Shown: positions 1 to 39,320, counted from the first letter of the stretch. The stretch: DNA of 43,340 nucleotides from Macrostomum lignano (GCA_002269645.1 NIVC01002781.1:1-43340), one strand, 5' to 3'. Notes: a model not told the origin generated them from the letters alone. Translations and numbers: made by a program.

Positions 1-260
1 TTAAGGTAATAGAAATTTTTTAATACATACTTTTATTGTCAATAGGAGTTAAAATATGCAAAAAATAGTTTCAGATAAAAGACTAATGAATGTTATACTA
101 TATTATAAACATTATTCTCATGTTTAGCTGATACTATTTTTAGTAATGGATGTATCTAATAGTGTCTTAATTCATAAATTATTGGATATTTCAGAACTAA
201 GTATATATCAAATACCACTCAAACAATCAAATAATATAATAAGCTTTAATCAACCAAAGC

Positions 261-606
261 ATGGCTGGTTCAGTTGAGCCCTATGACACTCATACTGGCC
301 AAAGAATCTGCCTTGTTATTCGGGACTGGCAATAGCTTCATTGAATGGAATTCCTTCAATATTTGAAAGTCTTGGCTTTAGAACTAAATACCAAGACCTG
401 CCTAATGGACTGGCCGATGACTGGCTAAGTACAGAGCTCATGAAATATGCCAATGAGACTGAAGCTGTTTTGTTTTGTACTTTGCTGGCTGCTGCCTATG
501 CAATTATCAACTGACTATCAATGGAGCACCATTTGATTTTCACTCAGTTATTGAACCATTTATGACATCCACTCAGTGGAAAGGAAGCCAAAGATTTCTT
601 TTTCAG
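261..606 (+). CDS. Caspase-like module 1, exon 1 (p20-like half), frameshifted as assembled
   Basis: ATG at 261. With -1 shifts at about 321-325 and 481-483 it reads MAGSVEPYDTHTGQRICLVIRG-LAIASLNGIPSIFESLGF...EAVLFCTFAGCCLCNYQLTINGAPFDFHSVIEPFMTSTQWKGSQRFLFQ. This aligns by eye with module 3 (LCVLYR, AFDSLQF, LSGC, DFDRLLEPFSKSPVWRCKPKVFIVQ). It ends in phase 0 at CAG|GTGAGA (donor 607). Could be a pseudogene. Confidence 0.6.
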
Positions 607-921
607 GTGAGAATGACCCACCTGGCTGGTTAATTTTTTTTGTAAATGATAAGCTAGTTAAAATCCAACATTTTACATTTTAAAATACTTTTTATTGTAA
701 CCCAATTAGAATTTTATAAATCATGACCTTACTAACCTTATGTTTCATAACTCATTTTTTTAGTCCCATCTTCTTATGAACCTTATATAACCTTACTAGG
801 TATGGCCAGATGATATTGCATTCTTTACCTAACATACCTGATCCTGAAATACATGTACCTGACCTCAACTTACTTGACCCAATCTAATTTACCTGACTAA
901 CCATGACCTGATCTACCTGAA

Positions 922-1415
922 CTAGAACCTGAATTAACCCAACCCTGACCTAGACCTGAATTAACCCAACCCTGACCTAGACCTGAATTAACCCAACCCT
1001 GACTAGACCTGAATTAACCCAACCCTGACCTAGACCTGAATTAACCCAACCCTGACCTAGACCTGAATTAACCCAACCCTGACTAGACCTGAATTAACCC
1101 AACCCTGACCTGACTACCAGGTCTGTGACCTTGACCTCTGTGACTCTGACCTGACCTACCTGCCTTGACACACCTGATCATGACCTGACCCTGACCTACA
1201 TGATCTGACACTGGCCTATTTGACCTTGACCTGACGTGACCTACCTGACCCTGACCTGACAGAACTGACCCTGACCTGACCCTGACCTGACCCTAACCTA
1301 CCTGACCCTGACCTACCTGACCCTAACCTACCTGACCCTACCTACCTGACTCCAACCTACCTAACCCTGACCTACCTGACCCTGACCTGACCCTGGTCTG
1401 ACCCTGACTTGACCT
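922..1415. repeat. 27-bp minisatellite grading into degenerate (CCTGA)n, in the intron of module 1
   Basis: About 7 copies of TAGACCTGAATTAACCCAACCCTGACC, followed by CCTGACCTA-type units. Confidence 0.9.
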
Positions 1416-1436
1416 ACTTAGCCTCCCCTCGCGCAG

Positions 1437-1739
1437 GTGAGCCGCACGAAGCCGCTGCTCCCACGGACGCGGGCCAATCGGCCCCGGCTATTCCGAGACA
1501 TTCCCTGCCAGTTGGACCGACTTTGCGGTCATCCGCGCCGGCGAGCACCTGACGGAGGCCGTCCGGTCTGCCCTGCAGGACAAGGCGGTCGCAAGGCAGG
1601 ACTTCCGGTTCGATGTGGTGCAGCGAATTCACGAGAACTATAGCCAGCAGCTTGAGCATGGAGTCAGTCCGGACTTCTTTGCCAGCACCGGGCTCTGCTG
1701 AAACCGCTGTACCTTATGAGTACAAGTATTTATCGATAG
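1437..1739 (+). CDS. Caspase-like module 1, exon 2 (linker plus p10-like half), frameshifted as assembled
   Basis: Acceptor cctcccctcgcgcag| ends at 1436. Successive frames give VSR / EAAAPTDAGQSAPAIPRHSLPVG / TDFAVIRAGEHLTEAVRSAL...SPDFFASTG / LLKPLYL, stop TAG 1737-1739. Matches caspase p10 motifs (xPxxxDF and STLTKKLYF-like end). Needs three -1 shifts; without the last one it stops at 1701. Confidence 0.55.
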
Positions 1740-1959
1740 AATACCCTGTATCTATTAGAGGACTTATATTAGAGAATTTATAGTAGAGGACTTTTATACA
1801 TAATCTCGCCTCTTCCACTGGCTGTTCCGGTCTGAAAATTTATAAATATATAGTGCCTTGCCAAGTGATCTTTTTCAAATTTCAATAGTTTTGTTGCGAT
1901 TTATAATTAATGAGTCAGTGACCCCACAATACCATGACCTGGAGAATGATCTACTTACT

Positions 1960-2605
1960 GACCTATGATAAATGACCAATGACCCGTGATGGAAGAGCAG
2001 GAGGACCACTGACCCATTACGAATGACCCACTGACCATGATGACTGACCCACTGACCCATGACGACTGACCCACTAACCATGATGACTGACCCACTGACC
2101 CATGATGACTAGCCCACTGACCTACGGTGAATGACCCACTGACCAATGGCACACTGACCAATGACGACTGACCCACTGACCCATGATGACTGGCTCACTG
2201 ACCATGATGACTGGCTCACTGACCTACGCGTGAATGACCCACTGATCCATGACGAATGGCACACTGACCCATGACCACTGGCTCACTGACCCATGATGAC
2301 TGACCCACTGACCCATGACCGCTGCTCACTGTCGACTCACAATGAATGATCCACTGACCCATGACGAATGACCCACTGATCCATGATGACTGACCCACTG
2401 ACCCATGATGACTGACCCACTGACCCATGATGACTGACCCACTGACCCATGACGAATGACCACTGACCCATGATGATTGACCCACTGACCCATGATGACT
2501 GGCCACTGTCGACCCACAGTGAATGACCTGCTCTCGACCCACAGTGAATGACCCACTGTCGACCCACAGTGAATGACCCACTGACCCGTGATGAATGACC
2601 CACAG
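1960..2605. repeat. Degenerate ~22-bp minisatellite (TGACTGACCCACTGACCCATGA)
   Basis: Tandem units visible directly. Confidence 0.9.
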
Positions 2606-2641
2606 CCCAACCCTGATCCTAAATGCCTCCAACCCTTGCAG

Positions 2642-3005
2642 CAGTCCGACCGGCACCCACATGCAGCAGATCCCGACGAGCTGCTGGCTGCCTACCCGCT
2701 CTCCAGACGAGGCCACTGCCTCATCGCCACCATGAAATTCGGCGACTGTTCACCGCCCTTCAAAGCCGACCTGCCGGCCCGGGCCGAAGACTACGAGCGC
2801 GCCCTGCTGGGCCTCGGCTTCGACAAGCAACGAATCGTCCGTTGGACGACGTGAACTCCGGGTCGGTGAACTCTGAGCTCGGCCGGCTGGCAGCGTCAGC
2901 CGAACACAACCCGCTGGACTGTCTGGTGGTCATCCTGATCTGCGAGTACGGCTTCCTTCTGACGCCGCCGTCGGGGGTGGTTCACCGGGCGTCAGGTCGG
3001 AGCAG
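2642..3005 (+). CDS. Caspase-like module 2, first identified exon (p20 N-terminal half), frameshifted
   Basis: Acceptor ccaacccttgcag| ends at 2641 (tandem CAG|CAG). Reads AYPLSRRGHCLIATMKF...YERALLGLGFDKQRIVR / LDDVNSGSVNSELGRLAASAEHNPLDCLVVILICEYG, a typical caspase p20 start, with ICEYG where SHG is expected. Donor CAG|GTGGGC at 3006. -1 shifts at about 2842 and somewhere in 2950-3003. Confidence 0.7.
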
Positions 3006-3044
3006 GTGGGCTGTTAATGCATTCGCTTCTTAATCGAAATCCTG

Positions 3045-3625
3045 CTCACAATCCCCTGACCCACAATCCCTGACCCACAATCACCTGACCCACAATCCTT
3101 TGACCCACAATCCCTGACCCACAATCCCTGACCCACAATCACCTGACCCACAATCCCTGACCCACAATCCCCTGACCCTCAATCCCTGACCCACAATCCC
3201 CTGACCCACAATCCCTGACCCACAATTCCCTAACCCACAATCCCCTGACCCACAATCCCCGGACCCGCAATCCCCTGACCACAATCCCCTGACCCACAAT
3301 GGCCCTGACCCACAATCCCCTGACCCTCAATCCCCTGACCACAATCACCTGACCCAAAATCCCCTGACCCACAATCTCCTGACCCGCAATCCCCTGACCG
3401 CAATCCCTGACCCACAATTCCCTAACCACAATCCCCTGACCCACAATCCCCGGACCCGCAATCCCTGACACACAATCCCCTGACCCACAATGGCCCTGAC
3501 CCTCAATCCCTGACCCACAATCACCTGACCCACAATCCCCTGACCCGCAATCCCCTGACCTGCAATCCCCTGACCCACAATCCCCTGACCCACAATCCCC
3601 TGACACGCAATCCCCTGACCCAAAA
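3045..3625. repeat. 14/15-bp minisatellite (ACAATCCCCTGACCC), in the intron of module 2
   Basis: About 40 units with variable C-run length. Confidence 0.95.
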
Positions 3626-3644
3626 TCCCATCCCCGCTCTGCAG

Positions 3645-4218
3645 GGCATGGACTCCGGCTACTATCGCTACGGCAGCAGCAGGTACAGCGTCCCTAGCAA
3701 CCAAACCGACGCCGTCCTGGAGAACCCGCTGCGCCCGAAACTTCGCCTGCACGAGGAGGTGTTCAGCCGGTTTAGCTCGGACCGCTGTCCAGCCCTGGCC
3801 GGCAAGCCGCGTCTGTTCATCGTGCACACCCGCGCGAAATGGAACGCCTGGACTGTATGCAGCGAATTCGCCGGCACCACTTTGGTTTCATGCTGAACCC
3901 CGGGCGGCTGGAAGAGTACATCTCCCTGACCCGCTGCCAGGAGTTTCAGCTGGGCCCAGACTTCTACATCCTGTATGCGCCGCTGCCCTTCATGGACAGC
4001 CATCGGTGCCGAACCCGGCCCAGGAGCTGGCCAAGGCGATGCTGACAGCAGGACAGCAAAATTCTGACCGCGGCGCCGAGCTGACGGACATGGTGCTGGA
4101 GCTGATGGCCAAGGTGGGAGACAGCGGTTGCGCCGAGATCGCCATGCCGAAGGTGTTCAGCACCCTGACTAAGCTGGTGCGGTTCCCTGCCAGCGACGGT
4201 CGGGTCGGTCGCTATTAG
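3645..4218 (+). CDS. Caspase-like module 2, last exon (end of p20 plus p10), frameshifted
   Basis: Acceptor tccccgctctgcag| ends at 3644. Reads VFSRFSSDRCPALAGKPRLFIVHT / ...QLGPDFYILYAP / ...ELTDMVLELMAKV...AMPKVFSTLTKLVRFP, stop at 4218. ORFs 3648, 3839 and 4006 join by -1 shifts near 3828-3839 and 4005. Confidence 0.75.
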
Positions 4219-4518
4219 CTTAGATCGGCGCAGGTTTTTAAACTGGTGCCATTAATACGAATTTCAAATGCTGTGTTTTTTACTAACAATAAGTAGCATA
4301 GTTAGTACGCTGTCTTTTCGAATTTAGGAAAACTGTTTTATAATTTTGACATGGAGTCAAACGGAGTCTTAAAAAAGTTTTTTTATCAGTAAAATACAAT
4401 TGTGTAGAGATTTTTATTGACAAATGGCAGCCTTGTTTACTTTTTTACGCGTAGATTAACAGGCAGGATGGTACACAGAAGGGTAGGCAGACGGACAGAC
4501 AGTGACAAAAACAAAAAG

Positions 4519-4534
4519 GCAGACACAGACAGAC

Positions 4535-4599
<65 letters not shown>

Positions 4600-4612
4600 A
4601 AGACAGACAGGC

Positions 4613-4679
<67 letters not shown>

Positions 4680-4763
4680 GAGGCAGACAGGCAGAGACGG
4701 GCAGGCAGTCAGACAGACAGACAGACAGACAAACAAACAGACAGACAGACAGACAGACAGACC

Positions 4764-4803
<40 letters not shown>

Positions 4804-4890
4804 GGCAGACAGACAGGCAAACAGACAGGCAGACAGACAGACAGACAGACAGACAGGCAGGCAGGCAGACAGGCAAACAGACAGACAGGC

Positions 4891-4969
<79 letters not shown>

Positions 4970-5016
4970 GACAGACAGGCAAACAGACAGACAGACAGGC
5001 AAACAGACAGACACAG
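4519..5016. repeat. (GACA)n microsatellite
   Basis: Direct observation. Confidence 0.98.
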
Positions 5017-5044
5017 TCAGCCGCACCCCGCCGCAGCCCCGGCC

Positions 5045-5716
5045 ATGCCGCAGCAGTACCCGTGCAGCCGGAAGCTCTGCGTGCTGTATCGCGACAATCC
5101 CCGGGTCCGACTGCAGCCGATGCGCGACGCCTTCGACAGCCTCCAGTTCGAGCGCCGGGAGCGCAACGTGCTGAGTGGCGAGACCAACCGGGAGGTGTAC
5201 GAGTACTTCGATACCCTCGCCGACGATCAGAGCTGCGACGTGTACGATTGTCTGGTGGTCGGCCTGTCGGGCTGCTACAACGCCCTGGACGGCTGGGGCA
5301 TCAACGTGTCGGGCCTGGACGTGGACTTTGACCGCCTGTTGGAGCCGTTCAGCAAGTCCCCGGTGTGGCGCTGCAAGCCCAAGGTGTTCATCGTTCAGTA
5401 CGATAACGAAGGCCTGCTGACTAAGTCGAGGATCTGCTGCGACGCCAACAGGCTGCCGAATGGGTCGCAGGCGGCTGCGGCCAGCGGCCTTCCCGTCTTC
5501 GCTGACACGGCACTGGTGCTGGGGCATGGCGGCCCACAGTTCACCGTCACCCTGTGCGATTTAGTCACCAAGTTTGGCAACCAGCTGGAGTTTCACCAGC
5601 TCATGACTCTGGTGAACCAGCGGGTTCTGCAGCTGCCGAGGCCTGACGATATGGCGCCCTGGTCTGTGGGAGTCGTCAGCCACCTCACCAAGAAGCTCTA
5701 TCTCGGTCAGGTATGA
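5045..5716 (+). CDS. Caspase-like module 3, intact p20+p10 fold, predicted catalytically inactive (223 aa from ATG 5045)
   Basis: Uninterrupted GC-rich ORF starting gccATG. Motifs FDSLQF, DCLVVGLSGC (His absent), KPKVFIVQYDNEG (QACRG absent), LPVFADT, LEFHQLMTLVNQRV, VSHLTKKLYL. May extend 5' through an acceptor at 5020. Confidence 0.8.
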   Translation: MPQQYPCSRKLCVLYRDNPRVRLQPMRDAFDSLQFERRERNVLSGETNREVYEYFDTLADDQSCDVYDCLVVGLSGCYNALDGWGINVSGLDVDFDRLLEPFSKSPVWRCKPKVFIVQYDNEGLLTKSRICCDANRLPNGSQAAAASGLPVFADTALVLGHGGPQFTVTLCDLVTKFGNQLEFHQLMTLVNQRVLQLPRPDDMAPWSVGVVSHLTKKLYLGQV

Positions 5717-5764
5717 TAGACTCGCATCTCAGTCTGCCAGTGCCAACTGTCTGCTTCCTGTTTA

Positions 5765-5885
5765 CTCTCATCTCTCTTTTCCCTCTTCTCCCTTTCTTCT
5801 CCCCTCTCTCTCTCTCTTCTCTCTCTCTTCTCCCCTCTCTTCTCTCCCTCTCTTTTCTCTCTATTCTTTCTTTTTTGTCTCTCTT
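5765..5885. repeat. CT-rich low-complexity tract
   Basis: Direct observation. Confidence 0.85.
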
Positions 5886-6533
5886 TTACCGATTGTGAAT
5901 GAAAGTGAACCAAATCGCTGAGCTCAAAACAGAAAAGACTGCACCTTTGGTTCAAGTCCCATTTTTTGTCCAACTCTCGCCCTCAATATTGTAGACACTT
6001 GTTTATGATACTGTACATATCGGAGATTGACTGACTACGCTCGTAAACAGTTGCACTCATAAGGTAATCGCACTGTGAATACTGATTAAGTGTTCAGTTT
6101 TCTCCAAATTTAATTACATCATTCAGTTGCTGCTAACACACTGCTTACATACCACATTGCGTCAATATAAATGTATCTTGTTAGCTACACGCAAACTTAT
6201 TCCGAACTCTAAATGTGTTTTGTGGATATATTTATACTCGTATGTTTAAATCAGCCTTCTCAACTCTGATTCCGTGTGCCATGCTTTCAGATCTTTAAAT
6301 GATATATTTGTCTGTCTATATCTATTTATTATATGATAAGTAATATTTTTATAAGATTAAAGGCTAAATTGCCACTTTTAATAAGATGATTTGGGTGTTT
6401 TCGTGTTAAGAAGACTGTTTTATTTACAGTATACATGTATAGCTACGTACGCAATGATAAACAAGTCTAAAACGTAACAAATTAAACTTTAAAATCGATA
6501 GAGGTTGGCTGTTTGACGTTGAAATTAAAATTC

Positions 6534-6845
6534 TAGCCAATAGGAATACAGGACGAAGTGGCCGGGAGTGGGGATGGGTGCAATCAAGGAGCTAGCCAAT
6601 AGGAATGCAGGAAGACGGAGGGGCTGGGGAGTGGGGTGGGTGCAATCCAGAGCCAGCCACTAGGAATGCAGGAAGACGGAGGGGCTGGGGAGTGGGGTGG
6701 GTGCAATCCAGAGCCAGCCACTAGGAATGCAGGAAGACGGAGGGGCTGGGGAGTGGGGTGGGTACAATCCAGAGCCAGCCACTAGGCATGCAGAAAGACG
6801 GAGTGGCTGGGGAATGGGGTGGGTACAATCTAGAGCCAGCAAATA
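6534..6845. repeat. 61-bp minisatellite, about 5 copies
   Basis: AGGAATGCAG recurs at 6601, 6662 and 6723. Confidence 0.9.
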
Positions 6846-7329
6846 GGATTCGATAGTGGTGGGTTTTGATAAAAAGTTTCTACCACAAACTAGCAGATCT
6901 GATGGCAGAAACATGCATTGAAGTACGAGTTTCACCCCAGGCAAATTGGTGTAAATTTCGCCACACAGAATGCGCGGCCACAAAGCGTGGTTTCGTGACT
7001 GGCAGTGATTATTGCCTTGGCTTACTAACTGACTAGCCAAGCTTTCAATCTGCGCACAGAGTAGAAACACAGCCTGCCACCCAGCACGGACTCCAGCAGT
7101 TTCCGGTGACAGTGACAGTTGAGGATGAAATATACTATCTGGATCTGTCATCGGGTCGTCAGGGCCCGCTCGCTAGCTGTCAATTTGAGTAGAGAAACTG
7201 TGAGAGCCTTGCGGCTGCGGGGAGTTCCAGCTACTGCAGGCTAAAGGCTAATTGTACCCCGCTTCGGTGTCAGCACTTTCCGCGTAGAATTGATTCAATA
7301 TCGAAGCTGCAGTGTGAATGAAGGGCAAG

Positions 7330-8155
7330 AGTAAGGGGGAAAGTGTGAGGGTAGAGTGTGACGGAGTCTTAGCGAGAGTCTGAGGGAGAGTCTGAGGAAG
7401 AGTGTAAGGGAGAGTCTGAGGAAGAGTGTAAGGGAGAGTCTGAGGGAGAGTCTGAGGAAGAGTGTAAGGGAGAGTCTGAGGGAGAGTCTGAGTGTAGAGT
7501 CTGAGGAAGAGTGTAAGGGAGAGTCTGAGGGAGAGTCTGAGGAAGAGTGTAAGGGAGAGTCTGAGGGAGAGTCTGAGGAAGAGTGTAAGGGAAGAGTCTG
7601 AGGGAGAGTCTGAGGGTAGAGTCTGAGGGAGAGTCTGAGGGTAGAGTCTGAGGGAGAGTCTGAGGGTAGAGTCTGAGGGAGAGTGTGAAGAGTATCTGAA
7701 GGAGAGTCTGAGGGAGAGTCTGAGGGAGAGTCTGAGGGAGAGTCTGAGGGAGAGTCTGAGGGTAGAGTCTGAGGGAGAGTGTGAAGAGTATCTGAAGGAG
7801 AGTCTGAGGGAGAGTCTGAGGGAGAGTCTGAGGGAGAGTCTGAGGGAGAGTCTGAGGGAGAGTGTGAAGAGTATCTGAAGGAGAGTCTGAGGAGAGAGTC
7901 TGAGGGAGAGTCTGAGGGAGATTGTGAGGGGAGAGTCGGGGAGAGTCTGATAGAGAATCTGAGCTAGGAGAGAGTCTGAAGGAAAGTGTGAGGGAGGCTG
8001 ATCAGGGGAGAGTCTGGGGAGGTCTGAGGGAGATTGTGAGGGGAGAGTCGGGGAGAGTCTGATAGAGAATCTGAGCTAGGAGAGAGTCTGAGGGAGAGTG
8101 TGAGGGAGGCTGATCAGGGGAGAGTCTGGGGAAGTCTGAGGGAGGGTGCGAGAGG
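7330..8155. repeat. 12-bp minisatellite (GAGAGTCTGAGG) and variants
   Basis: Direct observation. Confidence 0.95.
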
Positions 8156-9164
8156 AGAGGGAGTAGAGTACGAGGTAGCACGCAGACACTATTAGTGAGA
8201 AGTTCCCAGGCCCTCATCTCAGTTCTCATTTTCAGCCGCAGTCCGCTTAAGTGGCAGCAGTTTCCATCATCATCAACAGCATCATCATGCCCATGCAATA
8301 ATCCGATTTTAGCAGATTCGGTTCGGCTCGCGCCCGAGCCGCTAAGAAAAATCATTATTGATAGTTTATAGGGTCTGGGACTATCAGGGTGGGGGCCGGA
8401 GCCGCGGGTGTCGAGTCGATGAAGCGGAGGCTGCGACTGATACCCGCTATTATGGAGGGAAGCAGCAGATCTGTCTGTCCGCCGCAGCGAAGTTTCTATC
8501 CCAATAGCTCTCCCACTCTCTCTCTCCCCCCCCCCTCAGCGTGTATGGAGAGGATATCGAGTCTGATAGGAAATTGAAATTCGAGCCCGAACTCGCTACA
8601 CACGCCTGGGGAGAGACGTGAAGTGAGAGAGGGGCGCGCGCGGCTGGGTGTTGGCTGATAGATATAGCTGCGGATGGGCACTTGGGCAGTGGGAGTTTAT
8701 CCCCAGCCAGAAATTGCCCCCCCCATACCCCAATTTTCCACTCATTAGCGACTGCGCAGCCGGAGTGTCCGCGGCGGTTTTGGGAGCGTCGGTGTGGCCG
8801 CTATGAATTCGGAGTCGCTGTCACTCCATCTCTCTGTTCCCCCTCTCTCTCAGTCTCCCTGCTCTCATAGAAACCACTTGATACTCAGCAAGGCGGACCG
8901 AAGCTGCTGCTGCTGCCGCCAGTTCATCATGTGCTGCTCTCTTTTCGTAGCCTTAGAATTTCTTGTGGGTTTTTTTTATTTTGCTTGCTTGAAACTCAGT
9001 TAATGTGTGCTTGTTTCTGTACCCTGACTGTCCGTGTGCTGTAGTCCGCTCCGAAGCTGAATCGACATTGAGCCTCTGTTTCTTGTATTGCTGGCAGCCT
9101 GCAACCGTCTCCATCCGCTTCTTCTGTTCGGCTATGAGCCTCTCCAGCAATTTCTGTCCCCTCC

Positions 9165-9362
9165 ACTCTCCTCTCCTCTCCTCTCCTCTCCTCTCCTCTC
9201 CTCTCCTCTCCTCTCCTCTCCTCTCCTCTCCTCTCCTCTCCTCTCCTCTCCTCTCCTCTCCTCTCCTCTCCTCTCCTCTCCTCTCCTCTCCTCTCCTCTC
9301 CTCTCCTCTCCTCTCCTCTCCTCTCCTCTCCTCTCCTCTCCTCTCCTCTCCTCTTCTCTCTT
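9165..9362. repeat. (CTCCT)n pentanucleotide microsatellite
   Basis: Direct observation. Confidence 0.98.
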
Positions 9363-10184
9363 CTCTCCTCTGCCCTCAGCAACACCTGGCAGTGGTGCAT
9401 ATTCAGATCCCAATATCAATCAGTGTTGCAAACAAGAATAGCACTGGATCTGCCTTACCTCACCTCTCTACAAAATTGTCCACTTGGTGTTCGTATAAAA
9501 CACGGCAAATCGCTTTGAACAATCTGCCCGATTGAGTAGACGAGAGGAACCCCTCCCAGACCCCTATAGAAAGCTAACAAGAAGTTGTGGCAGGAGGAGG
9601 CGGATCGCAGATCGGATGTGCCCTGCTCCGAGTCCTCGGCCTCGTTGTTGTGACCACTTCAGAACTAGCTAAAGTTTTGCCTGCTCGTCCCCGGAGCAAG
9701 GGGTCAACTTAAAATCAGGCTGCATATTGAAGTCAATGGGCTCTGTTCAAAAGTTTTCAATCCCGTAGACTGCTGGACGAGGTGCCGAAGCAGTCCTGCG
9801 AATCATTGTGCCACCCACTCAGCCGGTACATCCTGCTTGAGGCCTATTATTGAGCTGCTGGATGCCGCACGCAATACCCGACTCTGTCAGCTCGCAGCCT
9901 GGGGTCTCCGCCCCCTCTCTCTCTCTCTCTCTCTCCTCTCTCGCTGCGCTCTCTCAGTCTCGGAAGTTGTCGTCCAACCCCCCCCTTCCCCGACCCTCTG
10001 CCGAGTTTAATCTCCCGGATCCTCACAAAAAGACGGCGGGGGTCTCCCAGAGGCGGAGCTTCTCAAGTGAGGAGCGGGGCGGAGCCGTAGGATCTCACGG
10101 TTCTCCGATGGGTTTTGAGAATCTCGCAGCTCACGCTAGTGGGAATTAATGAGCGAGGAAGCTGCGCAGCTGAGCTGGAAGAGA

Positions 10185-10980
10185 GGGTAGAGATGGGTCA
10201 GGCTGAGTGGAGATGGGTCAGGCTGAGTGGAGATGGGTCAGGCTGGGTAGAGATGGGTCAGGCTGGGTAGAGATGGGTCAGGCTGGGTAGAGATGGGTCA
10301 GGCTGGGAAGAGATGGGTCAGGCTGGGTAGAGATGGGTCAGGCTGGGAAGAAATGGGTCAGGCTGAGTGGAGATGGGTCAGGCTGGGTAGAGATGGGTCA
10401 GGCTGGGTAGAGATGGGTCAGGCTGGGTAGAGATGGGTCAGGCTGGGTAGAGATGGGTCAGGCTGGGTAGAGATGGGTCAGGCTGGGTAGAGATGGGTCA
10501 GGCTGGGTAGAGATGGGTCAGGCTGGGTAGAGATGGGTCAGGCTGGGTAGAGATGGGTCAGGCTGGGTAGAGATGGGTCAGGCTGGGTAGAGATGGGTCA
10601 GGCTGGGTAGAGATGGGTCAGGCTGAGTGGAGATGGGTCAGGCTGGAAAGAGATGGGTCGGGGAAGGTAAAGATGGGTCGGGGAGGGTAAAGATGGGTCG
10701 GGGAGGGTGAAGATGGGTCGGGGAGGGTAAAGATGGATCGGGGAGGGTAAAGATGGGTCGGGGAGGGTAAAGATGGGTCGGGGAGGGTAAAGATGGGTCG
10801 GGGAGGGTAAAGATGGGTCGGGGAGGGTAAAGATGGGTCGGGGAGGGTAAAGATGGGTCAGGGAGGGTAAAGATGGGTCGGGGAGGGTAAAGATGGGTCG
10901 GGGAGGGTAAATATGGGTCGGGGAGGGTAAAGATGGGTCGGGGAGGGTAAAGATGGGTCGGGGAGGGTAAAGATGGGATA
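10185..10980. repeat. 20-bp minisatellite with two sub-arrays (AGATGGGTCAGGCTGGGTAG, then AGATGGGTCGGGGAGGGTAA)
   Basis: About 40 units; variant switch near 10650. Confidence 0.97.
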
Positions 10981-11509
10981 AAGGCTGGATTGATAATCAA
11001 GCAGTGGCCAGTTTATCATCTGTTCGGTCCTCAACTGCCCCCATCGTTTTTTTATCCGGGGATTCAACGCAGGATTAACGTCTCTCGTTGAGATGGGATC
11101 AAGAAAAAAGATATTCTCATGTTGCGGGATTTTAATCCCTTTAGCCCTATCTCCATCTCAGTTCTCAGCCGAGCTGCTCATCCGATCCCATGAGAATTAG
11201 GGGGAAAACATCGGTAGAGGCTTGAGCTGCCCAAAATGGCGTAATGGGATCGAGGATCATTGAGCAAAGCATTCGGAATCCCTTTCGCTGCTCAGGTGCT
11301 GGCCTGACAGATCGGAGGCTGTAATAACTCCTGATGAGGCTGTGGAAGCTGGGGCGGTAGTTATCGACAAGGATTATTAAAGCTGATGATGAGCGACTTG
11401 TCATGGGCAATGAGTGAAGGTAGCTGCAAGGCAATGGCACTCGTTGAAATGGTTGGAGGATAAGAAATGTTGAGGTTGATATAGATGGAGATAGGCGAGA
11501 GGCCGGAGG

Positions 11510-13425
11510 GAGGAGAGTGACAGAGCGGAGACACAGGGTGAGAAGGAGATGCAGAGAGTGGAGACACAGGGTAAGGAGTGGCAGAGAGCGGAGACACAGG
11601 GTGAGAAGGAGTGGCAGAGAGCGGAGACACAGGGTGAGAAGGAGAGGCAGAGAGCGGAGACACAGGGTGAGAAGGAGTGGCAGAGAGCGGAGACACAGGG
11701 TGAGAAGGAGAGGCAGAGAGCGGAGACACAGGGTGAGAAGGAGAGGCAGAGAGTGGAGACACAGGGTGAGAAGGAGAGGCAAAGAGCGGAGACACAGGGT
11801 GAGAAGGAGAGGCAGAGAGTGGAGACACAGGGTGAGAAGGAGAGGCAGAGAGTGGAGACACAGGGTGAGAAGGAGATGCAGAGAGTGGAGACACAGGGTG
11901 AGAAGGAGATGCAGAGAGCGGAGACACAAAGTGAGAAGGAGATGCAGAGAGCGGAGACACAGGGTGAGAAGGAGATGCAGAGAGCGGAGACACAGGGTGA
12001 GAAGGAGATGCAGAGAGCGGAGACACAGGGTGAGAAGGAGATGCAGAGAGCGGAGACACAGGGTGAGAAGGAGATGCAGAGAGCGGAGACACAGGGTGAG
12101 AAGGAGAGGCAGAGAGTGGAGACACAGGGTGAGAAGGAGAGGCAGAGAGCGGAGACACAGGGTGAGAAGGAGAGGCAGAGAGTGGAGACACAGGGTGAGA
12201 AGGAGTAGCAGAGAGTGGAGACACAGGGTGAGAAGGAGATGCAGAGAGCGGAGACACAGGGTGAGAAGGAGAGGCAGAGAGTGGAGACACAGGGTGAGAA
12301 GGAGAGGCAGAGAGCGGAGACACAGGGTGAGAAGGAGATGCAGAGAGTGGAGACACAGGGTGAGAAGGAGATGCAGAGAGCGGAGACACAAAGTGAGAAG
12401 GAGATGCAGAGAGCGGAGACACAGGGTGAGAAGGAGATGCAGAGAGCGGAGACACAGGGTGAGAAGGAGATGCAGAGAGCGGAGACACAGGGTGAGAAGG
12501 AGATGCAGAGAGCGGAGACACAGGGTGAGAAGGAGAGGCAGAGAGTGGAGACACAGGGTGAGAAGGAGAGGCAAAGAGCGGAGACACAGGGTGAGAAGGA
12601 GAGGCAGAGAGTGGAGACACAGGGTGAGAAGGAGAGGCAGAGAGTGGAGACACAGGGTGAGAAGGAGATGCAGAGAGTGGAGACACAGGGTGAGAAGGAG
12701 ATGCAGAGAGTGGAGACACAGGGTGAGAAGGAGAGGCAGAGAGTGGAGACACAGGGTGAGAAGGAGAGGCAGAGAGTGGAGACACAGGGTGAGAAGGAGA
12801 TGCAGAGAGCGGAGACACAGGGTGAGAAGGAGTGGCAGAGAGCGGAGACACAGGGTGAGAAGGAGAGGCAGAGAGTGGAGACACAGGGTGAGAAGGAGAG
12901 GCAGAGAGTGGAGACACAGGGTGAGAAGGAGAGGCAGAGAGCGGAGACACAGGGTGAGAAGGAGAGGCAGAGAGTGGAGACACAGGGTGAGAAGGAGTAG
13001 CAGAGAGTGGAGACACAGGGTGAGAAGGAGATGCAGAGAGCGGAGACACAGGGTGAGAAGGAGAGGCAGAGAGCGGAGACACAGGGTGAGAAGGAGATGC
13101 AGAGAGCGGAGACACAAAGTGAGAAGGAGATGCAGAGAGCGGAGACACAGGGTGAGAAGGAGATGCAGAGAGTGGAGACACAGGGTGAGAAGGAGATGCA
13201 GAGAGCGGAGACACAAAGTGAGAAGGAGATGCAGAGAGCGGAGACACAGGGTGAGAAGGAGATGCAGAGAGCGGAGACACAGGGTGAGAAGGAGATGCAG
13301 AGAGCGGAGACACAGGGTGAGAAGGAGATGCAGAGAGCGGAGACACAGGGTGAGAAGGAGATGCAGAGAGCGGAGACACAGGGTGAGAAGGAGATGCAGA
13401 GAGCGGAGACACAGGGTGAGAAGGG
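11510..13425. repeat. 33-bp minisatellite (GCAGAGAGCGGAGACACAGGGTGAGAAGGAGAT), about 58 copies
   Basis: Direct observation; source of several spurious long ORFs. Confidence 0.98.
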
Positions 13426-14067
13426 CGCAGAGAATTAACAATCCGTGTCAAAAATCCCCATCCAAAGGAGGTGCCCGCTGTTCCCATTCGCTCGCATCCC
13501 ACATCCCACTGGCAGAGCCAGTTCGTAAACAAACAAATCCCCGGGAGAAATCTTGTCTCAGTCTAAATCCTCTTCTCTCCTTTTAGGATCGCATTTCAGA
13601 TGGTCGTCGAAATTTTTTTAAAGCTTTTTATTAGTGGCTCCTGTGCCGGTCAAAGATGGCCAATTTGGTTGCCAGATGCGAGTCTCAGCCAGTCTCAGTT
13701 CTCAATGAGAATATCTTGATGGCATCGCAGAGAGACACAGAGAGAAACGCATAAGTGGCAGCCCAGCCCAACTTCAAACGGCATAATTGGCTTTTGTCCG
13801 TTTCGGCCGGAGGTTTCAGCCAGCACAGGCCTATCCATGTCCCCGCTCTTCCCTGCCTCCTGAAGTGGGGATAAGGATCCCCTTCTCATCCTTGTCTGAA
13901 GTCTCGTGGGAGAGTCGCCAAAGGATTTGAAGATCCTTGGCGGTCCCCGGCTTCACTTGCATTTATCTGGCAGAAGGGACCGACTGCCAGTTCTCTGGCC
14001 AAGTGGCTCAGGCTTAGCGAGTCCGGACTAATGAAGACCGTGAATCAGTTCCGGTGCTGGGTTGGGA

Positions 14068-15310
14068 TCACTCTCATTCACTGTCATTCACTCTCATTCA
14101 CTCTCATTCACTGTCATTCACTCTCATTCACTCTCATTCACTCTCATTCACTCTCCTTCACTGTCATTCACTCTCATTCACTCTCATTCACTCTCCTTCA
14201 CTGTCATTCACTCTCATTCACTCTCATTCACTCTCATTCACTCTCATTCACTCTCATTCACTCTCATTCACTCTCATTCACTCTCATTCACTCTCATTCA
14301 CTCTCATTCACTCTAATTCACTCTCATTCACTCTCACTCTCATTCACTGTCATTCACTCTAATTCACTCTCATTCACTCTCACTCTCATTCACTGTCATT
14401 CACACTCATTCACTCTCATTCACTCTCACTCTCATTCACTGTTATTCACTCTAATTCACTCTCACTATCATTCACTGTCATTCACTCTAATTCACTCTCA
14501 TTCACTCTCACTCTCATTCACTGTCATTCACTCTCATTCACTCTCACTCTCATTCACTGTTATTCACTCTAATTCACTCTCACTCTCATTCACTGTCATT
14601 CACTCTAATTCACTCTCATTCACTCTCACTCTCATTCACTGTTATTCACTCTCATTCACTCTCCTTCACTGTTATTTACTCTCATTCACTCTCATTCACT
14701 GTCACTCTCATTCACTGTCATTCACTCTCATTCACTGTCACTCTCATTCACTGTCAATCTCATTCACTCTCACTCTCATTCACTCTCACTCTCATTCACT
14801 GTCACTCTCATTCACTGTCACTCTCATTCACTCTCACTCTCATTCACTGTCACTCTCATTCACTGTCAGTCTCATTCACTGTCACTCCCATTCACTGTCA
14901 GTCTCATTCACTGTCACTCCCATTCACTGTCAGTCTCATTCACTCTCACTCTCATTCACTCTCACTCTCATTCACTCTCACTCTCATTCACTGTCACTCT
15001 CATTCACTGTCACTCTCATTCACTCTCACTCTCATTCACTCTCACTCTCATTCACTGTCACTCTCATTCACTGTCACTCTCATTCACTCTCACTCTCATT
15101 CACTGTCACTCTCATTCACTGTCAGTCTCATTCACTGTCACTCTCATTCACTGTCAGTCTCATTCACTCTCACTCTCATTCACTCTCACTCTCATTCACT
15201 CTCACTCTCATTCACTGTCACTCTCATTCACTGTCACTCTCGTTCACTCTCACTCTCATTCACTCTCACTCTCATTCACTGTCACTCTCATTCACTGTCA
15301 CTCTAGTTCA
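14068..15310. repeat. 10/16-bp minisatellite (CTCTCATTCA / CTCTCACTCTCATTCA)
   Basis: Direct observation. Confidence 0.97.
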
Positions 15311-16371: not shown

Positions 16372-16897
16372 GTCTGATTCCATTCTGCCTTAAAAATGTG
16401 AAAAAGTATCTGATGATAATCCAAAAATATAAATTATTACACATAATGGACAGCTCCCACCAGATCCCACATTCAGCCGCAGCGATAAACGGTTGATTTT
16501 GGCCACCCGGTTCCCAGGCTGATTAGGGATCGATCCCAGCCCGGATCAGCTATTAATAACGAGATTCCATGGGAGAGTAGCTGGTAAAATCGAATCGAAA
16601 CGGATGAGGCGGACCAGCAGCTTCCGTGCCAATCTGGCTGACCGCTCGGGATTTCTGAGGAGTTTTATCCCCCAATCCATCGGATTCTTTCTTTGCGCCA
16701 ACCGATTTGGATAATTGTTTACGCTGCCCGCTGCGCTTCGCTTTGTGGGGGATTTTTCGAATTTAGGGATCGCCTTGCAATAATAATACGGGGATCGGAC
16801 TGGCTCTGGGGGGCGGGGCAGCTTCAGTTCCCACGCTTCTGTAACTCCCTGCAGCTGCGACTTCGCTTGATTGCTGCGCCTGATAAACAGCGATTAG

Positions 16898-17870
<973 letters not shown>

Positions 17871-18729
17871 GCCAGCCTCGGTGTTTCCTCATCGACTAAT
17901 TCAGCTCTCTTTCCCTTTCCCCGCGGCCGTTTTCCGCCATCAATCTATCCAAGTGTACCTATTTATCTTCACTTAACTCTCTCCTGTGATCTGTGCAGCC
18001 ATCCAACCTAAACAGTTCCCCGTCTTCATCCTAGCAGTCCAGCATTATCGGCCATGTTTGCGTCGGCGGTAGCGGCGGTGTCAGGTTCAGCCAGGAGCGG
18101 TGGCTCCGGCGGGTGCCACCACAAGAGGCCCGGGGGAAAAACTTCGCTCAGCCGGTGCCGTTCATGTTTCACGGCGGCTTGCATTGCCGACAGACTCGCC
18201 GATCGGCTTCGAACCCCTCTCGAGTGTCTCGGGCGTAATGAGGGCCGAGGCAAGTTTATCTGGGAGCAAGAAGTGGCCTATGGGAAATCCTCCCAGGTGC
18301 CAAGTGGGCGGCGGCAGCCTGTTTATTGTCAAACCATCTTCACCCGATGGGCCTCTTTAACAGGAGGAGAGGAAATGTGCAAGGGAAATCTAGGCCGAAG
18401 GGATATTTGGGATAACAATCTGATTTGGGAGCTAAGTGAGCGATATTAAGGTCAAGATTTCGATGTGTTTATCGAGGACCTTCACTCCGGTCCCTGAAGC
18501 AGCGGGGTTGTTAATCGGGGCTGCCAATGGCCGAAGTCAGCTCCTCTTACAGGTGTGGAGGTTGGAAAACAAGAAGGGCCTTCAAGCAGTCGTGCAGGCG
18601 TTCGCTTTCACTAGAGGCAGTTAGCGCCTGAAGTGGACCACCTTAATAAACGCTATTTCGATACATATCGGCAATCGGGATGATTTTCGGCTGCAAGTCT
18701 TGCCACGTTAACTGAAATTCCCCACACCG

Positions 18730-24019: not shown

Positions 24020-24200
24020 GGCGCCCCGGCCCGCAATTCCGGCCCCCTCTGCCCCCGTCGCCACCCCCGCCCTCTTCTAAAAGAGAAATCGGCCGCTCAA
24101 GCAAGAGAAGACCCACAACAGCAAAGCCGCTCCGAGACAAATTTGAAACAGAAGAAAATTCAAGCTGGATAGCAACACGGAGCGGCTCCTTCACGACTTG

Positions 24201-24301
24201 ATGAAGGACAGGAAATTGGCGCTGCAACATCTGGTCGGAATGCAGCAGCAGCAGCAGCAGCAGCAGCAGCCGCCAGCTCCGCAGTCGCCGCAGTCGCCAA
24301 C

Positions 24302-24333
<32 letters not shown>

Positions 24334-24934
24334 CGCCGCCGCCACCACCGCCGCTCTTCCTGCCGCCTCCGCTGCCGTCGCTGCAGTTCAGCCCCGACCA
24401 GGTTGGCCGCGTCTGCGAGACTCTGGAAGAGTCCGGCGACATCGAACGGCTCGGCCGGTTCCTCTGGTCGTTGCCGGCCAACCCGCTGCTGTGGGAGGCG
24501 CTGAACCGTCAGGAGTCCATCCTGAGGGCCCGCGCCATTGTGGCCTTCCACACCGGCAACTACCGGGAGATGTACCACCTCATGGAGCTGCACCACTTCG
24601 GCAAGGAGTCGCACGCTAAGCTGCAGACTCTGTGGCTGGAGGCGCACTACCTGGAGGCCGAGAAGCTCCGGGGCCGCCCGCTCGGGCCGGTGGACAAGTA
24701 CCGGGTGCGCAAGAAGTACCCGATGCCCCGGACCATCTGGGACGGCGAGCAGAAGACGCACTGTTTCAAGGAGCGAACCAGAGGCCTGCTGCGCGAGTGG
24801 TACCTGCAGGACCCGTACCCCAACCCGGCCAAGAAGCGGGAGCTGGCCTCGGCCACGGGCCTGACGCCCACCCAGGTTGGCAACTGGTTCAAGAATCGGA
24901 GGCAGCGAGACCGGGCCGCGGCGGCCAAGAACAG
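24201..24934 (+). CDS. Six3/6: SIX3/6 (optix-type) homeobox transcription factor, exon 1 (poly-Q/P N-terminus, SIX domain, homeodomain)
   Basis: SIX domain [30 protein letters not shown]...[13 protein letters not shown]; homeodomain with the Six3/6-diagnostic QKTH tetrapeptide and [20 protein letters not shown]. First ATG after the in-frame TGA at 24144 is 24201 (the track start at 24198 is TTG). Donor AG|GTGAGA at 24935, phase 2. Confidence 0.97.
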
Positions 24935-25067
24935 GTGAGAGTTTTAATCTGCGCTTGAGGAAAAAACTGCTTATAGAGATGCTGGTTAGATGACGCAAAT
25001 GCTGGTGTTTAGATGTCTTAGGTCATGGTTCTAGATCTAAGATATACAGCTAAGCGAGGTGTTCTTA

Positions 25068-34250: not shown

Positions 34251-35049
34251 ACTCCACGGTGCGAACTCCTGCGACTCCAACAATTTGGACGGCGACGGGC
34301 CGTCGAAATCCGACGCCGACGACGATGACGACCTGGACGACATCGACTACTTGCGTGGTGTCGCTCGTCGCAGCGGCGGCAGCGGCGGAGGCGGCAGCGG
34401 CGGCGGCATCGGTGGAGAAGTCGGACAGCTCGCTGACGAGGAGGACGACAGCTGGCTTGACGTCGAATCCGACGACGATGTCGACAAGGACGGCGACGAC
34501 GGCGAGGCGGCAACGACGGCCGACCTGGATGTCGACGGCGGCGCCGATAACCAGCAGAAGCAGCGTCGGAAGCGCCAGCGTCGGCTCCTTCAGCAGCAGC
34601 AGCAGCAGACGGCAGCCGGGATGAGCAGCGGTGAAGGCCATCACCAGCAGCCCATGGACTGCTCATTGAAGCCGAAGTCCGGCATGCCGCCGTCTCTGTT
34701 CCCGATCTCCTCGTTGCTGACCTCCGCCGCTGTCACCGCCGCCGCGGCGGCCGCCTCCTCCACAGCCAGCACAGTCGGCGCCAACTCCACGGGCGGCTCG
34801 CCGAACTCCTCCGCAGCCTCCGCCATCTCGGCGGCAGCAGCCGCAGCGGCCGCCGCCGCCGCCTTCTACGGCCGCTTTCCCATGCTGGGCGGCCTGGGCG
34901 GCTTCGCCGGCCTCCCGCTGCTGCCGCCGCCGCCGCCGCCGCACTCGATGCCGCAGCTGCCGTCGCTGCCTCCGCCGCTGCCGGCGCCTGCGGCTTCCGA
35001 GCATCACGTGACCGATTGGTCAGCCTCGAAGCGGGCGAGGAAAGAATGA
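34251..35049 (+). CDS. Six3/6: SIX3/6 exon 2 (acidic, poly-Q, poly-A, poly-P C-terminal region)
   Basis: Acceptor cacctctcccag| ends at 34250. Phase-2 joining gives KNR-LHGANSCDSNNLDGD, in frame with ORF 34285..35049 and echoing vertebrate KNRL. Total CDS 734+799 = 1533 nt. GC-rich coding-like composition; stop TGA at 35047-35049. Confidence 0.85.
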
Positions 35050-35377
35050 AAAGAGAGAAAATAAGGAATGCACTGAGTGACCCGCATACACAAGCGTACA
35101 TCTATCTAAAATATTATATCTGTCTTTTGTCTGTCTGTTTGTTACCATAGTCCAGCTGTTTTTGCGAGCACCGCCATTGTTACCCAACGCCCCTCAGTGC
35201 ACAGATCCCTCATGCCCGCTCTGTTCTGCTTAAATTTAAACATTGTTTTTATTTGTCAGCATCCGCAACCCAACATCGCTGATGGCGTTCGTAGCTTTTG
35301 TACAAATGTTTCACCGCCCTAGTCAATCTGTGTTTGCAGTCAGTGAGCAGCCTCTGGTATTGGGCCTGCCAGCACCC

Positions 35378-35967
<590 letters not shown>

Positions 35968-36101
35968 CAACTCATGCCCTGGTTTCCACCCAGCCGCAGC
36001 CTCCAGCCGCAGCTTTGCCCATGCTGACTGTCTGCACCTCCTCTCTCCGTATTGTAGCTGAAGTGTGGCGTCCCCCCGGCTTTGCAGACGGAGTTACTAT
36101 A

Positions 36102-36111
36102 AATAAATAAA
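36102..36111 (+). promoter_or_regulatory. Candidate Six3/6 polyadenylation signal (two overlapping AATAAA)
   Basis: AATAAATAAA about 1.05 kb after the stop codon. Would place the (TGTC)n tract inside the 3' UTR. Confidence 0.35.
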
Positions 36112-37525: not shown

Positions 37526-38399
37526 GTCTTTTCACACCGACTTCAGACCTTAAAATCCGTCTCGGGTCGGAGATCGCATTCCTTAATCCCCTGGCATTGC
37601 TGCCTAACTCAACAATGCCCCCCCCCACCCTCGCATGAAAAATGGTTATGAATTTCTCAAATTCGTGACCGCCAGCAGAACCTGTGGGATTTTTTTCGGA
37701 TTCGAAAACAATATTGTGAATCGCCGCTGCTATGAGCCCCGGTTGTTGGGAAGCGCAAGTTTAAAAGCGCACCGCCAGCTCAAGGCTTCAGCTAGATCCG
37801 ATGCCAAGCAAAAAGTACAAAAGGTCCTTTGACAAGACTCCGGGGCCAGCGTCGTGCAATTGTCGTTGTACATGCCGGACGATTAGAAAGTCAGAACCGC
37901 TGTGCACCCTGCGTGAGCGTGTTTATGACAGCACGCCTGCGTGCAGTATTGTAGCTTTCCCGCAAATATTCATATTTATTGATTTACATTCAGCTTTAAA
38001 ATTGAAGATAAAATTTTCTAAAACAAGAATTGCTCTGACCCAGCAGAAGTTAAGAGTCGCTATGCTCAAGGCTCTTGTCCTCCTTGGATGAAGCTGCTTT
38101 CAACCGCTTGATCGGCCTTGCGGACAGTTCAATGCCGGATCTGAATAAAACACAGCGCCAGCATCCCGTTTCTGCTGCTGCTGCCTCTAAAAGAAGCAGA
38201 TCATGCAATGAAAGTTGAATGGCGGCCAGAAAAAGTTTGCTGGGTAGGTGAGACAGTAGAGGGTGCAACGAAGGGTGACCGCTGCTGCTGCTGCCGAATG
38301 GCTGACTGCTCAGTCCCGCTTCGAGCAGCTGCGGCGAGCTCTCACCCTGTCACGCCTTCTGAGTGACACCTACAAGGAGCTGTGACTGCCTCATGCCTG

Positions 38400-39320
38400 C
38401 ATTGTGTGTCTTGCTGTGTCTGTCTTGTGTGTCTTGTTGTGTCTGTCTTGTGTGTCCTGTTGTGTCTGTCTTGTGTGTCCTACTGTGTCTGTCTTGTGTG
38501 TCTTACTGTGTCTGTCTTGTGTGTCTTGTTGTGTCTGTCTTGTGTGTCCTACTGTGTCTGTCTTGTGTGTCCTACTGTGTCTGTCTTGTGTGTCTTACTG
38601 TGTCTGTCTTGTGTGTCTTATTGTGTCTGTCTTGTGTGTCTTGTTGTGTCTGTCTTGTGTGTCTTATTGTGTCTGTCTTGTGTGTCTTATTGTGTCTGTC
38701 TTGTGTGTCTTACTGTGTCTGTCTTGTGTGTCTTGTTGTGTCTGTTATGTGTGTCTTACTGTGTCTTTCTTGTGTGTCTTGTTCTGTCTGTCATGTGTGT
38801 CTTGCTGTGTCTGTCTTGCGTGTCTTGCTGTGTCTGTCTTGTGTGTCTTGCTGTGTCTGTCATGTGTGTATTACTGTGTCTGTCTTGTGTGTCTTGTTGT
38901 GTCTGTCTTGTGTGTCTTGTTGTGTCTGTCATGTGTGTCTTGCTGTGTCTGTCTTGCGTGTCTTGCTGTGTCTGTCTTGTGTGTCTTGCTGTGTCTGTCA
39001 TGTGTGTATTACTGTGTCTGTCTTGTGTGTCTTGTTGTGTCTGTCTTGTGTGTCTTGTTGTGTCTGTCATGTGTGTCTTGCTGTGTCTGTCTTGTGTGTC
39101 TTGCTGTGTCTGTCTTGTGTGTCTTGTTGTGTCTGTCTTGTGTGTCTTGCTGTCTCTGCCGTGTGTCCTTGCTGTGTCTGCCATGTGTCCTTGCTGTGTC
39201 TGCCATGTGTCCTTGCTGTCTCTGCCATGTGTCCTTGCTGTGTCTGCCATGTGTCCTTGCTGTCTCTGCCATGTGTCCTTGCTGTCTCTGCCATGTGTCC
39301 TTGCTGTGTCTGTCTTGCTG
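38400..39320. repeat. 23-bp TG-rich minisatellite (CTGTGTCTGTCTTGTGTGTCTTG)
   Basis: Direct observation. Confidence 0.96.

Follow-up and report, generated by a model that had tools for sequence, protein, structure and literature searches.

A tandem trio of divergent caspase homologues lacking the catalytic dyad in the flatworm Macrostomum lignano

The stretch of DNA analyzed here, contig NIVC01002781.1 (43,340 bp) of the Macrostomum lignano assembly Mlig_3_7 (GCA_002269645.1), is referred to as the window, and carries three co-oriented caspase-homologous genes on the + strand at positions 261–1739, 2655–4218 and 5042–5716 (modules 1, 2 and 3, respectively). An earlier note, made from the sequence alone, had described a tandem cluster of three caspase-fold modules in which the catalytic His-Cys dyad is missing; the co-oriented cluster is indeed present in this flatworm, and all of the motif strings quoted at the time occur in the window on the + strand. 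The same locus is found on two sister contigs, NIVC01002782.1 (97 kb; locus L001) and NIVC01002007.1 (214 kb; locus L002), in an assembly of high redundancy, where duplicated blocks of at least 95% identity amount to 180 Mb (PMC5730564).

Comparison of the three copies indicates how the reading frames of the window should be read. Window positions 1–6718 align to L001 with 98.5% identity, and nearly all differences are single bases missing from the window. Thirteen bases are absent from the exons of modules 1 and 2, with 12 of the 13 located in homopolymer runs or base doublets, and not one true substitution separates these exons from those of the sister contigs; the sequence of module 3 is identical on all three contigs. 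L001 and L002 are themselves identical in all five exons and near-identical elsewhere outside repeats, and both sister contigs provide intact open reading frames (ORFs) and canonical GT-AG introns for modules 1 and 2. The pattern of one-base deletions is a polishing-error signature of NIVC01002781.1. Given the intact ORFs on both sisters and the concentration of deletions in homopolymers, we conclude that the frameshifts, which had been raised as possible pseudogene decay, stem from consensus errors in a redundant contig that was poorly polished and do not represent decay. The one-base polishing deletions also explain why the coding sequences (CDSs) deposited on NIVC01002781.1 are garbled, comprising a 70-residue fragment and a 313-residue protein partly translated out of frame. 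Across the longer interval 1–15213, one-base deletions likewise account for almost all differences of the window from L001 and L002, and those checked lie mostly in homopolymers or doublets. Redundant Mlig_3_7 contigs should be cross-checked before any pseudogene is called.

Gene models were resolved on the polished sister contig, to which the window coordinates of modules 1 and 2 were transferred by alignment; single-intron GT-AG solutions were sought within the called gene spans, and exactly one was found for each of these two genes. Module 1 starts with an ATG at position 261, and its first exon (261–606, lacking five bases in the window) encodes strands β1–β4 of the p20-like half and ends in ...FFFQ. 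The intron (607–1436; CAG/GTGAGA...CGCAG/G, where the slash marks the junction) is filled by 27-nt and ~5-nt tandem repeats, and cuts the gene exactly at the position equivalent to the caspase QACRG motif (Q/VSR). The second exon (1437–1739) continues with VSRTK, a short linker containing LLPTD/AG, and the p10-like half, ending with TAG at 1737–1739. By exact sequence match, module 1 corresponds to PAA55237.1 and PAA61670.1 (Mlig015211), a complete ORF of 218 residues that UniProt names "Caspase family p20 domain-containing protein".

Module 2 comprises exon 1 (2655–3005, with the first Met at 2661, strands β1–β3 and three bases missing from the window), an intron (3006–3644; CAG/GTGGGC...CTGCAG/G) that is almost entirely a 15-nt tandem array (3047–3629), and exon 2 (3645–4218, two bases missing), which encodes CPALAGKPRLFIVHTPRE (with Pro at the Cys column), PDFYILYAPLPFMDSHR, where the arginine of L3 survives, and the β6 strand STLTKLVRF before a TAG at 4216–4218. 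It matches PAA55236.1 (Mlig012903g5; 309 residues) exactly, and that deposited model is 5′-partial. The deposited CDS begins just downstream of an intergenic 22-nt tandem array, located by repeat scan at 2006–2603 between modules 1 and 2, which is probably responsible for the 5′ truncation of the transcript model. Module 3 is a single-exon gene (5042–5716, ATG at 5045) called as a CDS of 224–225 residues on all three contigs; it encodes GLSGCY, KPKVFIVQYDNEG and, at 5678–5704, the β6 strand SHLTKKLYL. The same repeat scan identified an (ACAG)n microsatellite (4525–5013) in the interval between modules 2 and 3. The mechanical ORF at 4502–5716 (404 residues) was rejected as a gene, as it reads through this microsatellite, with just the final 224 codons belonging to the gene. 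According to the deposited annotation the modules are three separate genes, and they are tandemly duplicated.

The coding frames contain no internal stop codons, compared to 1–12 in each of the five other frames, and at most 10 of 5000 composition-preserving shuffles remained open. In modules 2 and 3, GC content is 0.83–0.85 at third codon positions (GC3) versus 0.40–0.44 at second positions (GC2). GC3 differs markedly between the paralogues, at 0.54 in module 1, 0.83 in module 2 and 0.85 in module 3, even within a stretch of 5.5 kb. The poly(A) signal AATAAA was not found after any of the three stop codons. RNA-seq-derived transcripts are the sole basis of the Mlig_3_7 annotation, which was generated with StringTie/TACO, a de novo assembly, TBONE and TransDecoder (PMC5730564). 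Transcription is therefore implied by the match of the module 1 and 2 models to CDSs of this annotation.

The homology of the modules to caspases is real but distant. Pairwise identity is 17–25% among the modules and ~20–28% to caspase-3. Against Pfam Peptidase_C14 (PF00656; cut-off of 21.4 bits), the HMMER search suggested in the earlier note for frame-corrected peptides gave 27.0 bits (E = 4.2e-6) for the polished peptide of module 2 and 22.9 bits (E = 7.8e-5) for module 3. Using the unpolished, window-derived peptides, only module 3 passes; the failure of the others is due to the one-base deletions of the contig, and the polished versions score better. Module 1 is linked to module 3 by a BLASTP match (E = 5e-12, 25% identity over 147 residues). 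In phmmer searches of the PDB, modules 2 and 3 matched only caspases and c-FLIP, including ancestral effector caspase-3/6/7, caspase-6/-3/-7 and insect caspase-1; the matches of module 3 were restricted to caspase-6/3/7, those of module 2 included the c-FLIP structure 3h11_A, and module 1 alone returned nothing meaningful. A HMMER profile constructed from all three modules was also searched against 1.84 billion representative proteins, yielding 60 matches at E ≤ 1e-3, three of which are the locus itself. All 57 non-self matches fit a caspase-trained profile, and the caspase PK-x-F strand motif is present in each of the 55 near-full-length domains extracted from the profile matches.

To audit the active site, caspase domains were aligned in two separate MAFFT alignments (34 and 59 domains), anchored on the DCLVV strand, with the same outcome in both. 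At the column of caspase-3 Ser120-His121-Gly122, module 1 reads Gly-Cys-Cys (YFAGCC, 478–495), module 2 Cys-Glu-Tyr (ILICEYG, 2932–2952), and module 3 Gly-Cys-Tyr (GLSGCY, 5261–5278), all on the + strand. Hence the catalytic His of the S-H-G motif following β3 is replaced by Cys, Glu and Cys in modules 1, 2 and 3, correcting the register implied earlier, which had placed Gly at this column. At the column of caspase-3 Gln161-Ala-Cys163-Arg-Gly, the corresponding residues are Q-V-S-R-T, H-T-P-R-E and Q-Y-D-N-E, such that the catalytic Cys of the Q-A-C-x-G motif following β4 is replaced by Ser, Pro and Asp, respectively. The first of these sites is assembled by splicing of the end of module 1 exon 1 (..FLFQ, 595–606) to VSRTKP (1437–1454) across the GT-AG intron; the second, with Pro at the Cys column, lies in the CPALAGKPRLF / IVHT segment of module 2 (3786–3830); and the third, with Asp at the Cys column, lies in KPKVFIVQYDNEG (5375–5413), again all on the + strand. 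Of two readings previously offered for module 2, IVHT(P)R and IVHTRA, the polished copies bear out the one with proline (IVHTPRE). No shifted His or Cys that might rescue the site was found in any module in either alignment, a check that had been proposed along with the original description. Since both dyad residues are replaced in every module, none is capable of Cys-His proteolysis.

Two of the three modules are also without the substrate groove. Modules 1 and 3 have a deletion of the L3 substrate loop, in which caspase-3 has Arg207 (SWR); module 2 retains DSHR, the arginine of which is the counterpart of that in SWR; together with the preserved CPALAGKPRLF, this agrees with the earlier assessment of module 2 as the more canonical member. 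The P1-Asp pocket (Arg179/Gln283/Arg341 in caspase-1 numbering) is complete in no module: in modules 1 and 3 the first Arg and the Gln persist but Arg341 is gone with L3, and module 2 shows Lys, His and Arg at the three positions, the alignment of the first Arg being uncertain. Cys or Tyr stands in for the oxyanion-hole Gly, and module 3 has also lost the Arg of QACRG. An Asp-Ala pair in modules 1 and 3 (LLPTD/AG and ICCD/AN) aligns with the IETD/S linker cleavage site of caspase-3, and could conceivably make these two modules substrates of caspases.

The scaffold around this site appears to be preserved. AlphaFold2 models of modules 1 and 3, built on the 34-sequence alignment of caspase-type domains, have a predicted local distance difference test score (pLDDT) of 84.5 and a predicted template modeling score (pTM) of 0.84 for module 1, and 82.4 and 0.82 for module 3. 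In both, strands and helices succeed one another as in caspases, with the p20 part ahead of p10. Among the 50 PDB matches listed by Foldseek for each model, all are caspases, led by caspase-7/3/6, with template modeling (TM) scores of 0.59–0.73 (~0.7 to caspase-7/3/6) and a probability of 1.0. The structure prediction called for in the earlier note is accordingly in line with a caspase fold, and the p20/p10 architecture of a six-stranded sheet and five helices, as modeled for modules 1 and 3, is predicted to be kept. The KP-x-x-F strand is invariant in all three modules and the hydrophobic β strands are kept, as are helices α4 and α5 (e.g. GNQLEFHQLMTLVNQRV in module 3). The C-terminal β6 strand, which in caspases forms the dimer interface, is retained with an LTKxL motif, as LTKKLYL in module 3 or LTKLVRF in module 2. 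Peptidase_C14 is the only Pfam domain seen in the modules, so a tandem DED of the FLIP kind is missing; the stretches before β1 are short, with ~14 residues in the complete ORF of module 1 and a Met 10–20 residues upstream in the 5′-partial models of modules 2 and 3, consistent with the earlier statement that no CARD or DED prodomain is visible.

In neighbor-joining (NJ) trees with capped distances, modules 1 and 3 are sisters in 62–63% of bootstraps and module 2 is unplaced; the phylogenetic check proposed earlier thus upholds modules 1 and 3 as the closest pair, as does their BLASTP match. The nearest non-self profile match is also from M. lignano, namely domain 1 of PAA89054.1 (Mlig030125; E = 8.4e-12). 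This protein of 1072 residues combines a kinase and a caspase-like domain with ankyrin repeats and a further caspase domain, which is live, and is evidently the kinase-prodomain caspase of Horkan et al. 2024 (PMC11463336). Its domain 1 is dead, with Gly-Cys in place of Ser-His, a His in the position of the former Cys, giving a swapped dyad, and a shortened L3, and domain 2 is an ordinary SHG...QACRG caspase. Because Mlig030125 domain 1 has the same Gly-Cys for Ser-His as modules 1 and 3, the loss of the His site in modules 1 and 3 would seem to be shared rather than independent. The earlier proposal that the dyad was lost through different substitutions therefore holds for the Cys column (Ser, Pro and Asp) and probably not for the His site of modules 1 and 3. 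Cys at the His column also occurs in two further, unrelated dead domains of other animals.

Dead caspase domains are not confined to this locus. One or both dyad residues are missing from 12 of the 55 domains that the profile recovered, and eight of these 12 share a polypeptide with an intact-dyad domain, in insects, in a mollusc and in Mlig030125 of M. lignano. In many of the top profile matches, two or three caspase domains occur in tandem, with hosts including insects (Anabrus, Thrips, Frankliniella, Leptopilina, Graphocephala, Ephemera), lobster, snail, jellyfish and amphioxus. Automatic annotation had already flagged caspase homology for the modules; a literature search for the gene identifiers found nothing, and we did not find a description of them as dead caspases in the literature.

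Known non-catalytic caspase homologues provide a framework for considering function. C. elegans CSP-3 and CSP-2 bind CED-3 and restrain its auto-activation; CSP-3 is essentially a small subunit only, whereas the modules keep both p20-like and p10-like halves. To our knowledge pseudo-caspases are few, and each one that has been characterized (FLIP(L), CSP-3, CASPS18) is a control point of caspase activation. FLIP(L) carries Arg315 and Tyr360 at the dyad positions, favors a heterodimer with caspase-8 over homodimerization, and promotes or blocks activation (PMC7586951). The modules resemble c-FLIP(L) (CFLAR) in having a p20/p10-like domain with both dyad residues replaced, but the replacement residues differ, FLIP uses tandem DEDs for recruitment to FADD whereas the flatworm modules have no prodomain, and FLIP derives from caspase-8/10 whereas the modules are most like effector caspases 3/6/7. 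Aedes aegypti CASPS18, described as a decoy caspase that enhances CASPS19, is likewise a lineage-specific, prodomain-poor, effector-type paralogue with no catalytic capacity, thought to modulate a live paralogue (PMC4840389). However, CASPS18 has a known live partner, and the trio consists of three dead paralogues in a row with no live caspase in the 43-kb window. Domain 1 of Mlig030125 is similar in its species of origin, its Gly-Cys for Ser-His, its missing catalytic Cys and its short L3, but differs in residing in a multidomain protein beside a live QACRG domain and in having His at the old Cys column, and its clade with the trio is unsupported in the NJ trees. The Cg3/7-like clusters of Crassostrea gigas are tandem, lineage-specific, effector-like caspases with diverse or mutated p20 sites (His or Cys) and of unknown function (PMC7836458); they belong to another phylum, many are without p10, and they show no specific sequence kinship to the trio.

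Taken together, the modules form a divergent pseudo-caspase trio, with a caspase fold and no dyad, and we lean towards the view that they partner non-catalytically with live caspases. A dyad-less protein encoded by an intact gene describes the modules well, in that the dyad is absent, ORFs and splice sites are intact, and the models coincide with CDSs of a transcript-only annotation. The trio consists of tandem, now very divergent, duplicates of a prodomain-less effector-type caspase, which most likely act as pseudo-proteases of the FLIP(L), CASPS18 or CSP-3 type. Through the retained β6 strand, the modules might pair among themselves or engage live caspases of M. lignano, a role suggested by the precedents of FLIP(L) and CASPS18 and by the coexistence of dead and live domains in one polypeptide. 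Alternatively, the Asp-Ala pair at the linker processing position suggests that modules 1 and 3 could act as decoy substrates; either way, caspase activation would be tuned and nothing would be cut. The interpretation advanced in the earlier note is supported in part: the dyad-less caspase-fold cluster is borne out by Pfam (modules 2 and 3), the profile, the models of modules 1 and 3 and both alignments, whereas fully independent loss of the dyad and the hint of decay by frameshift, a contig artefact, are not. M. lignano is a model of regeneration and stem-cell biology in which transgenesis and RNA interference are available. Flatworms are reported to lack FADD, and their parasitic lineages to lack DED caspases as well (PMC11463336); in light of these reported losses, a prodomain-less, effector-like trio would constitute a different route to caspase regulation in flatworms, open to laboratory testing.

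A number of observations weigh against this reading. Module 1 alone falls below the Pfam threshold (15.2 bits, E = 0.017), and since the input alignment for AlphaFold consisted of caspases, the models are biased towards the caspase fold and depend on the homology claim. Transcript support for module 3 is indirect, coming from the CDS called on all three contigs. A tblastn search revealed no live caspase inside the 43-kb window as an obvious partner. No orthologue outside M. lignano was found in ~15 billion proteins, among which coverage of other Macrostomum species is uncertain; this result is consistent with the lineage restriction claimed from the outset. The exons are identical in the three genomic copies and provide no power to detect selection, and the paralogues are too diverged for meaningful synonymous divergence (dS), such that the case for function is indirect and draws on uninterrupted ORFs, canonical splice sites, the GC3 of modules 2 and 3, and gene models derived from transcripts.

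Alternatively, the modules might be functionless transcribed relics, i.e. recent duplicates of an old caspase paralogue that drift with no selected role. Such relics would be expected to show the extreme divergence observed among the modules and from caspase-3, the marginal Pfam scores and the deleted substrate loops, and the failure to recover an orthologue is compatible with them as well. Yet despite near-saturated divergence, the modules have open frames of 218–309 codons, canonical splice sites and a strong codon-position GC bias; in addition, the caspase core is good enough for confident AlphaFold models, and the genes are present in the transcript-only annotation. We therefore regard drifting relics as an unlikely explanation.

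It is improbable to a similar degree that the locus is one gene rather than three, with the modules as exons of a single mRNA for a protein of two or three pseudo-caspase domains in tandem, as in the multi-caspase-domain proteins known from other invertebrates. Two older UniProt models (A0A1I8I508 and A0A1I8H9E4) do fuse module 1 exon 2 to module 2, and the polished contig offers a canonical, in-frame pair consisting of a donor A/GTATTT, 12 nt before the module 1 stop codon, and an acceptor CTGCAG/TCCGACCC. Moreover, modules 2 and 3 have 5′-partial deposited CDSs that begin directly behind tandem repeats, and many of the profile matches are proteins with tandem caspase domains. On the other hand, the RNA-seq-based Mlig_3_7 annotation separates modules 1 and 2 under distinct transcript-cluster names (Mlig015211 and Mlig012903) and ends module 1 at its own stop codon (PMC5730564), and every module carries a Met of its own, as far ahead of β1 as expected. 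The junction in the older models (..MSTTVRPG..) would require a non-canonical acceptor on the polished sequence; an attempt to derive MSTTVRPG via canonical splice sites failed, with the canonical in-frame junction predicting MSTIRPG instead.

The recurrent replacement at the His column raises the question of residual or altered chemistry. The change from Ser-His to Gly-Cys might mark a redox sensor, a metal site or a relocated nucleophile, with the trio representing a flatworm-specific family built around this site. We consider this a distant prospect; if true, the modules would be a caspase-derived domain with a new chemistry, and not simply dead. More narrowly, the modules could still be enzymes, with the His-column Cys of modules 1 and 3 serving as nucleophile, redox center or metal ligand alongside Ser or Asp at the old Cys position. 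The presence of Cys at this column in modules 1 and 3 and in the swapped pair of Mlig030125 domain 1, and its recurrence in the two unrelated dead domains, would fit such an arrangement. Nonetheless, neither module 1 nor module 3 has a general base, the oxyanion-hole Gly has become Cys or Tyr, L3 with its Arg341 is deleted, and module 3 has lost the QACRG Arg; we know of no clan CD enzyme that operates in this configuration, and retained catalysis is very improbable. Finally, an artefact of chance ORFs in repeat-rich DNA or of mis-joined exons, which might be suspected in a window full of tandem repeats and one-base deletions whose longest ORF (4502–5716) crosses a microsatellite, is refuted by the three intact genes on two other contigs and by homology and fold evidence that is specific to caspases.

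The surroundings of the trio contribute no further members. On the sister contigs, a gene encoding 349 residues is called directly upstream (210–3148 in L001; 181–3148 in L002), beyond the start of the window; it was considered as a fourth module and rejected, as it has coiled-coil-like segments and no caspase similarity. Searches of the whole window by tblastn, with caspase-3 and module 3 as queries, found no further caspase-like segment outside 261–5716, and Rfam and tRNA scans of the window found nothing. At least three long (ACAG)n or (CTGT)n microsatellites occur in the window (4525–5013, 16894–17899 and 35340–36110), yielding spurious ORFs of several hundred codons in several frames, with TDRQ or LSVC repeats. 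Kilobase-scale tandem arrays at 11165–13586 and 38363–39509 contain open frames of 300–750 codons on both strands that match no family, and probably represent satellite DNA, not genes. An acidic low-complexity ORF of 254 residues at 34285–35049 (+) has only a sub-threshold Pfam match (YL1, 18 bits). Approximately 18 kb downstream of the trio, at 24198–24938 (+), an uninterrupted ORF of 246 residues encodes a homeobox protein of the Six1/2 (sine oculis) type, with Pfam scores of 153.7 bits for SIX1_SD and 48.4 bits for Homeodomain, preceded by poly-Gln and poly-Pro tracts.

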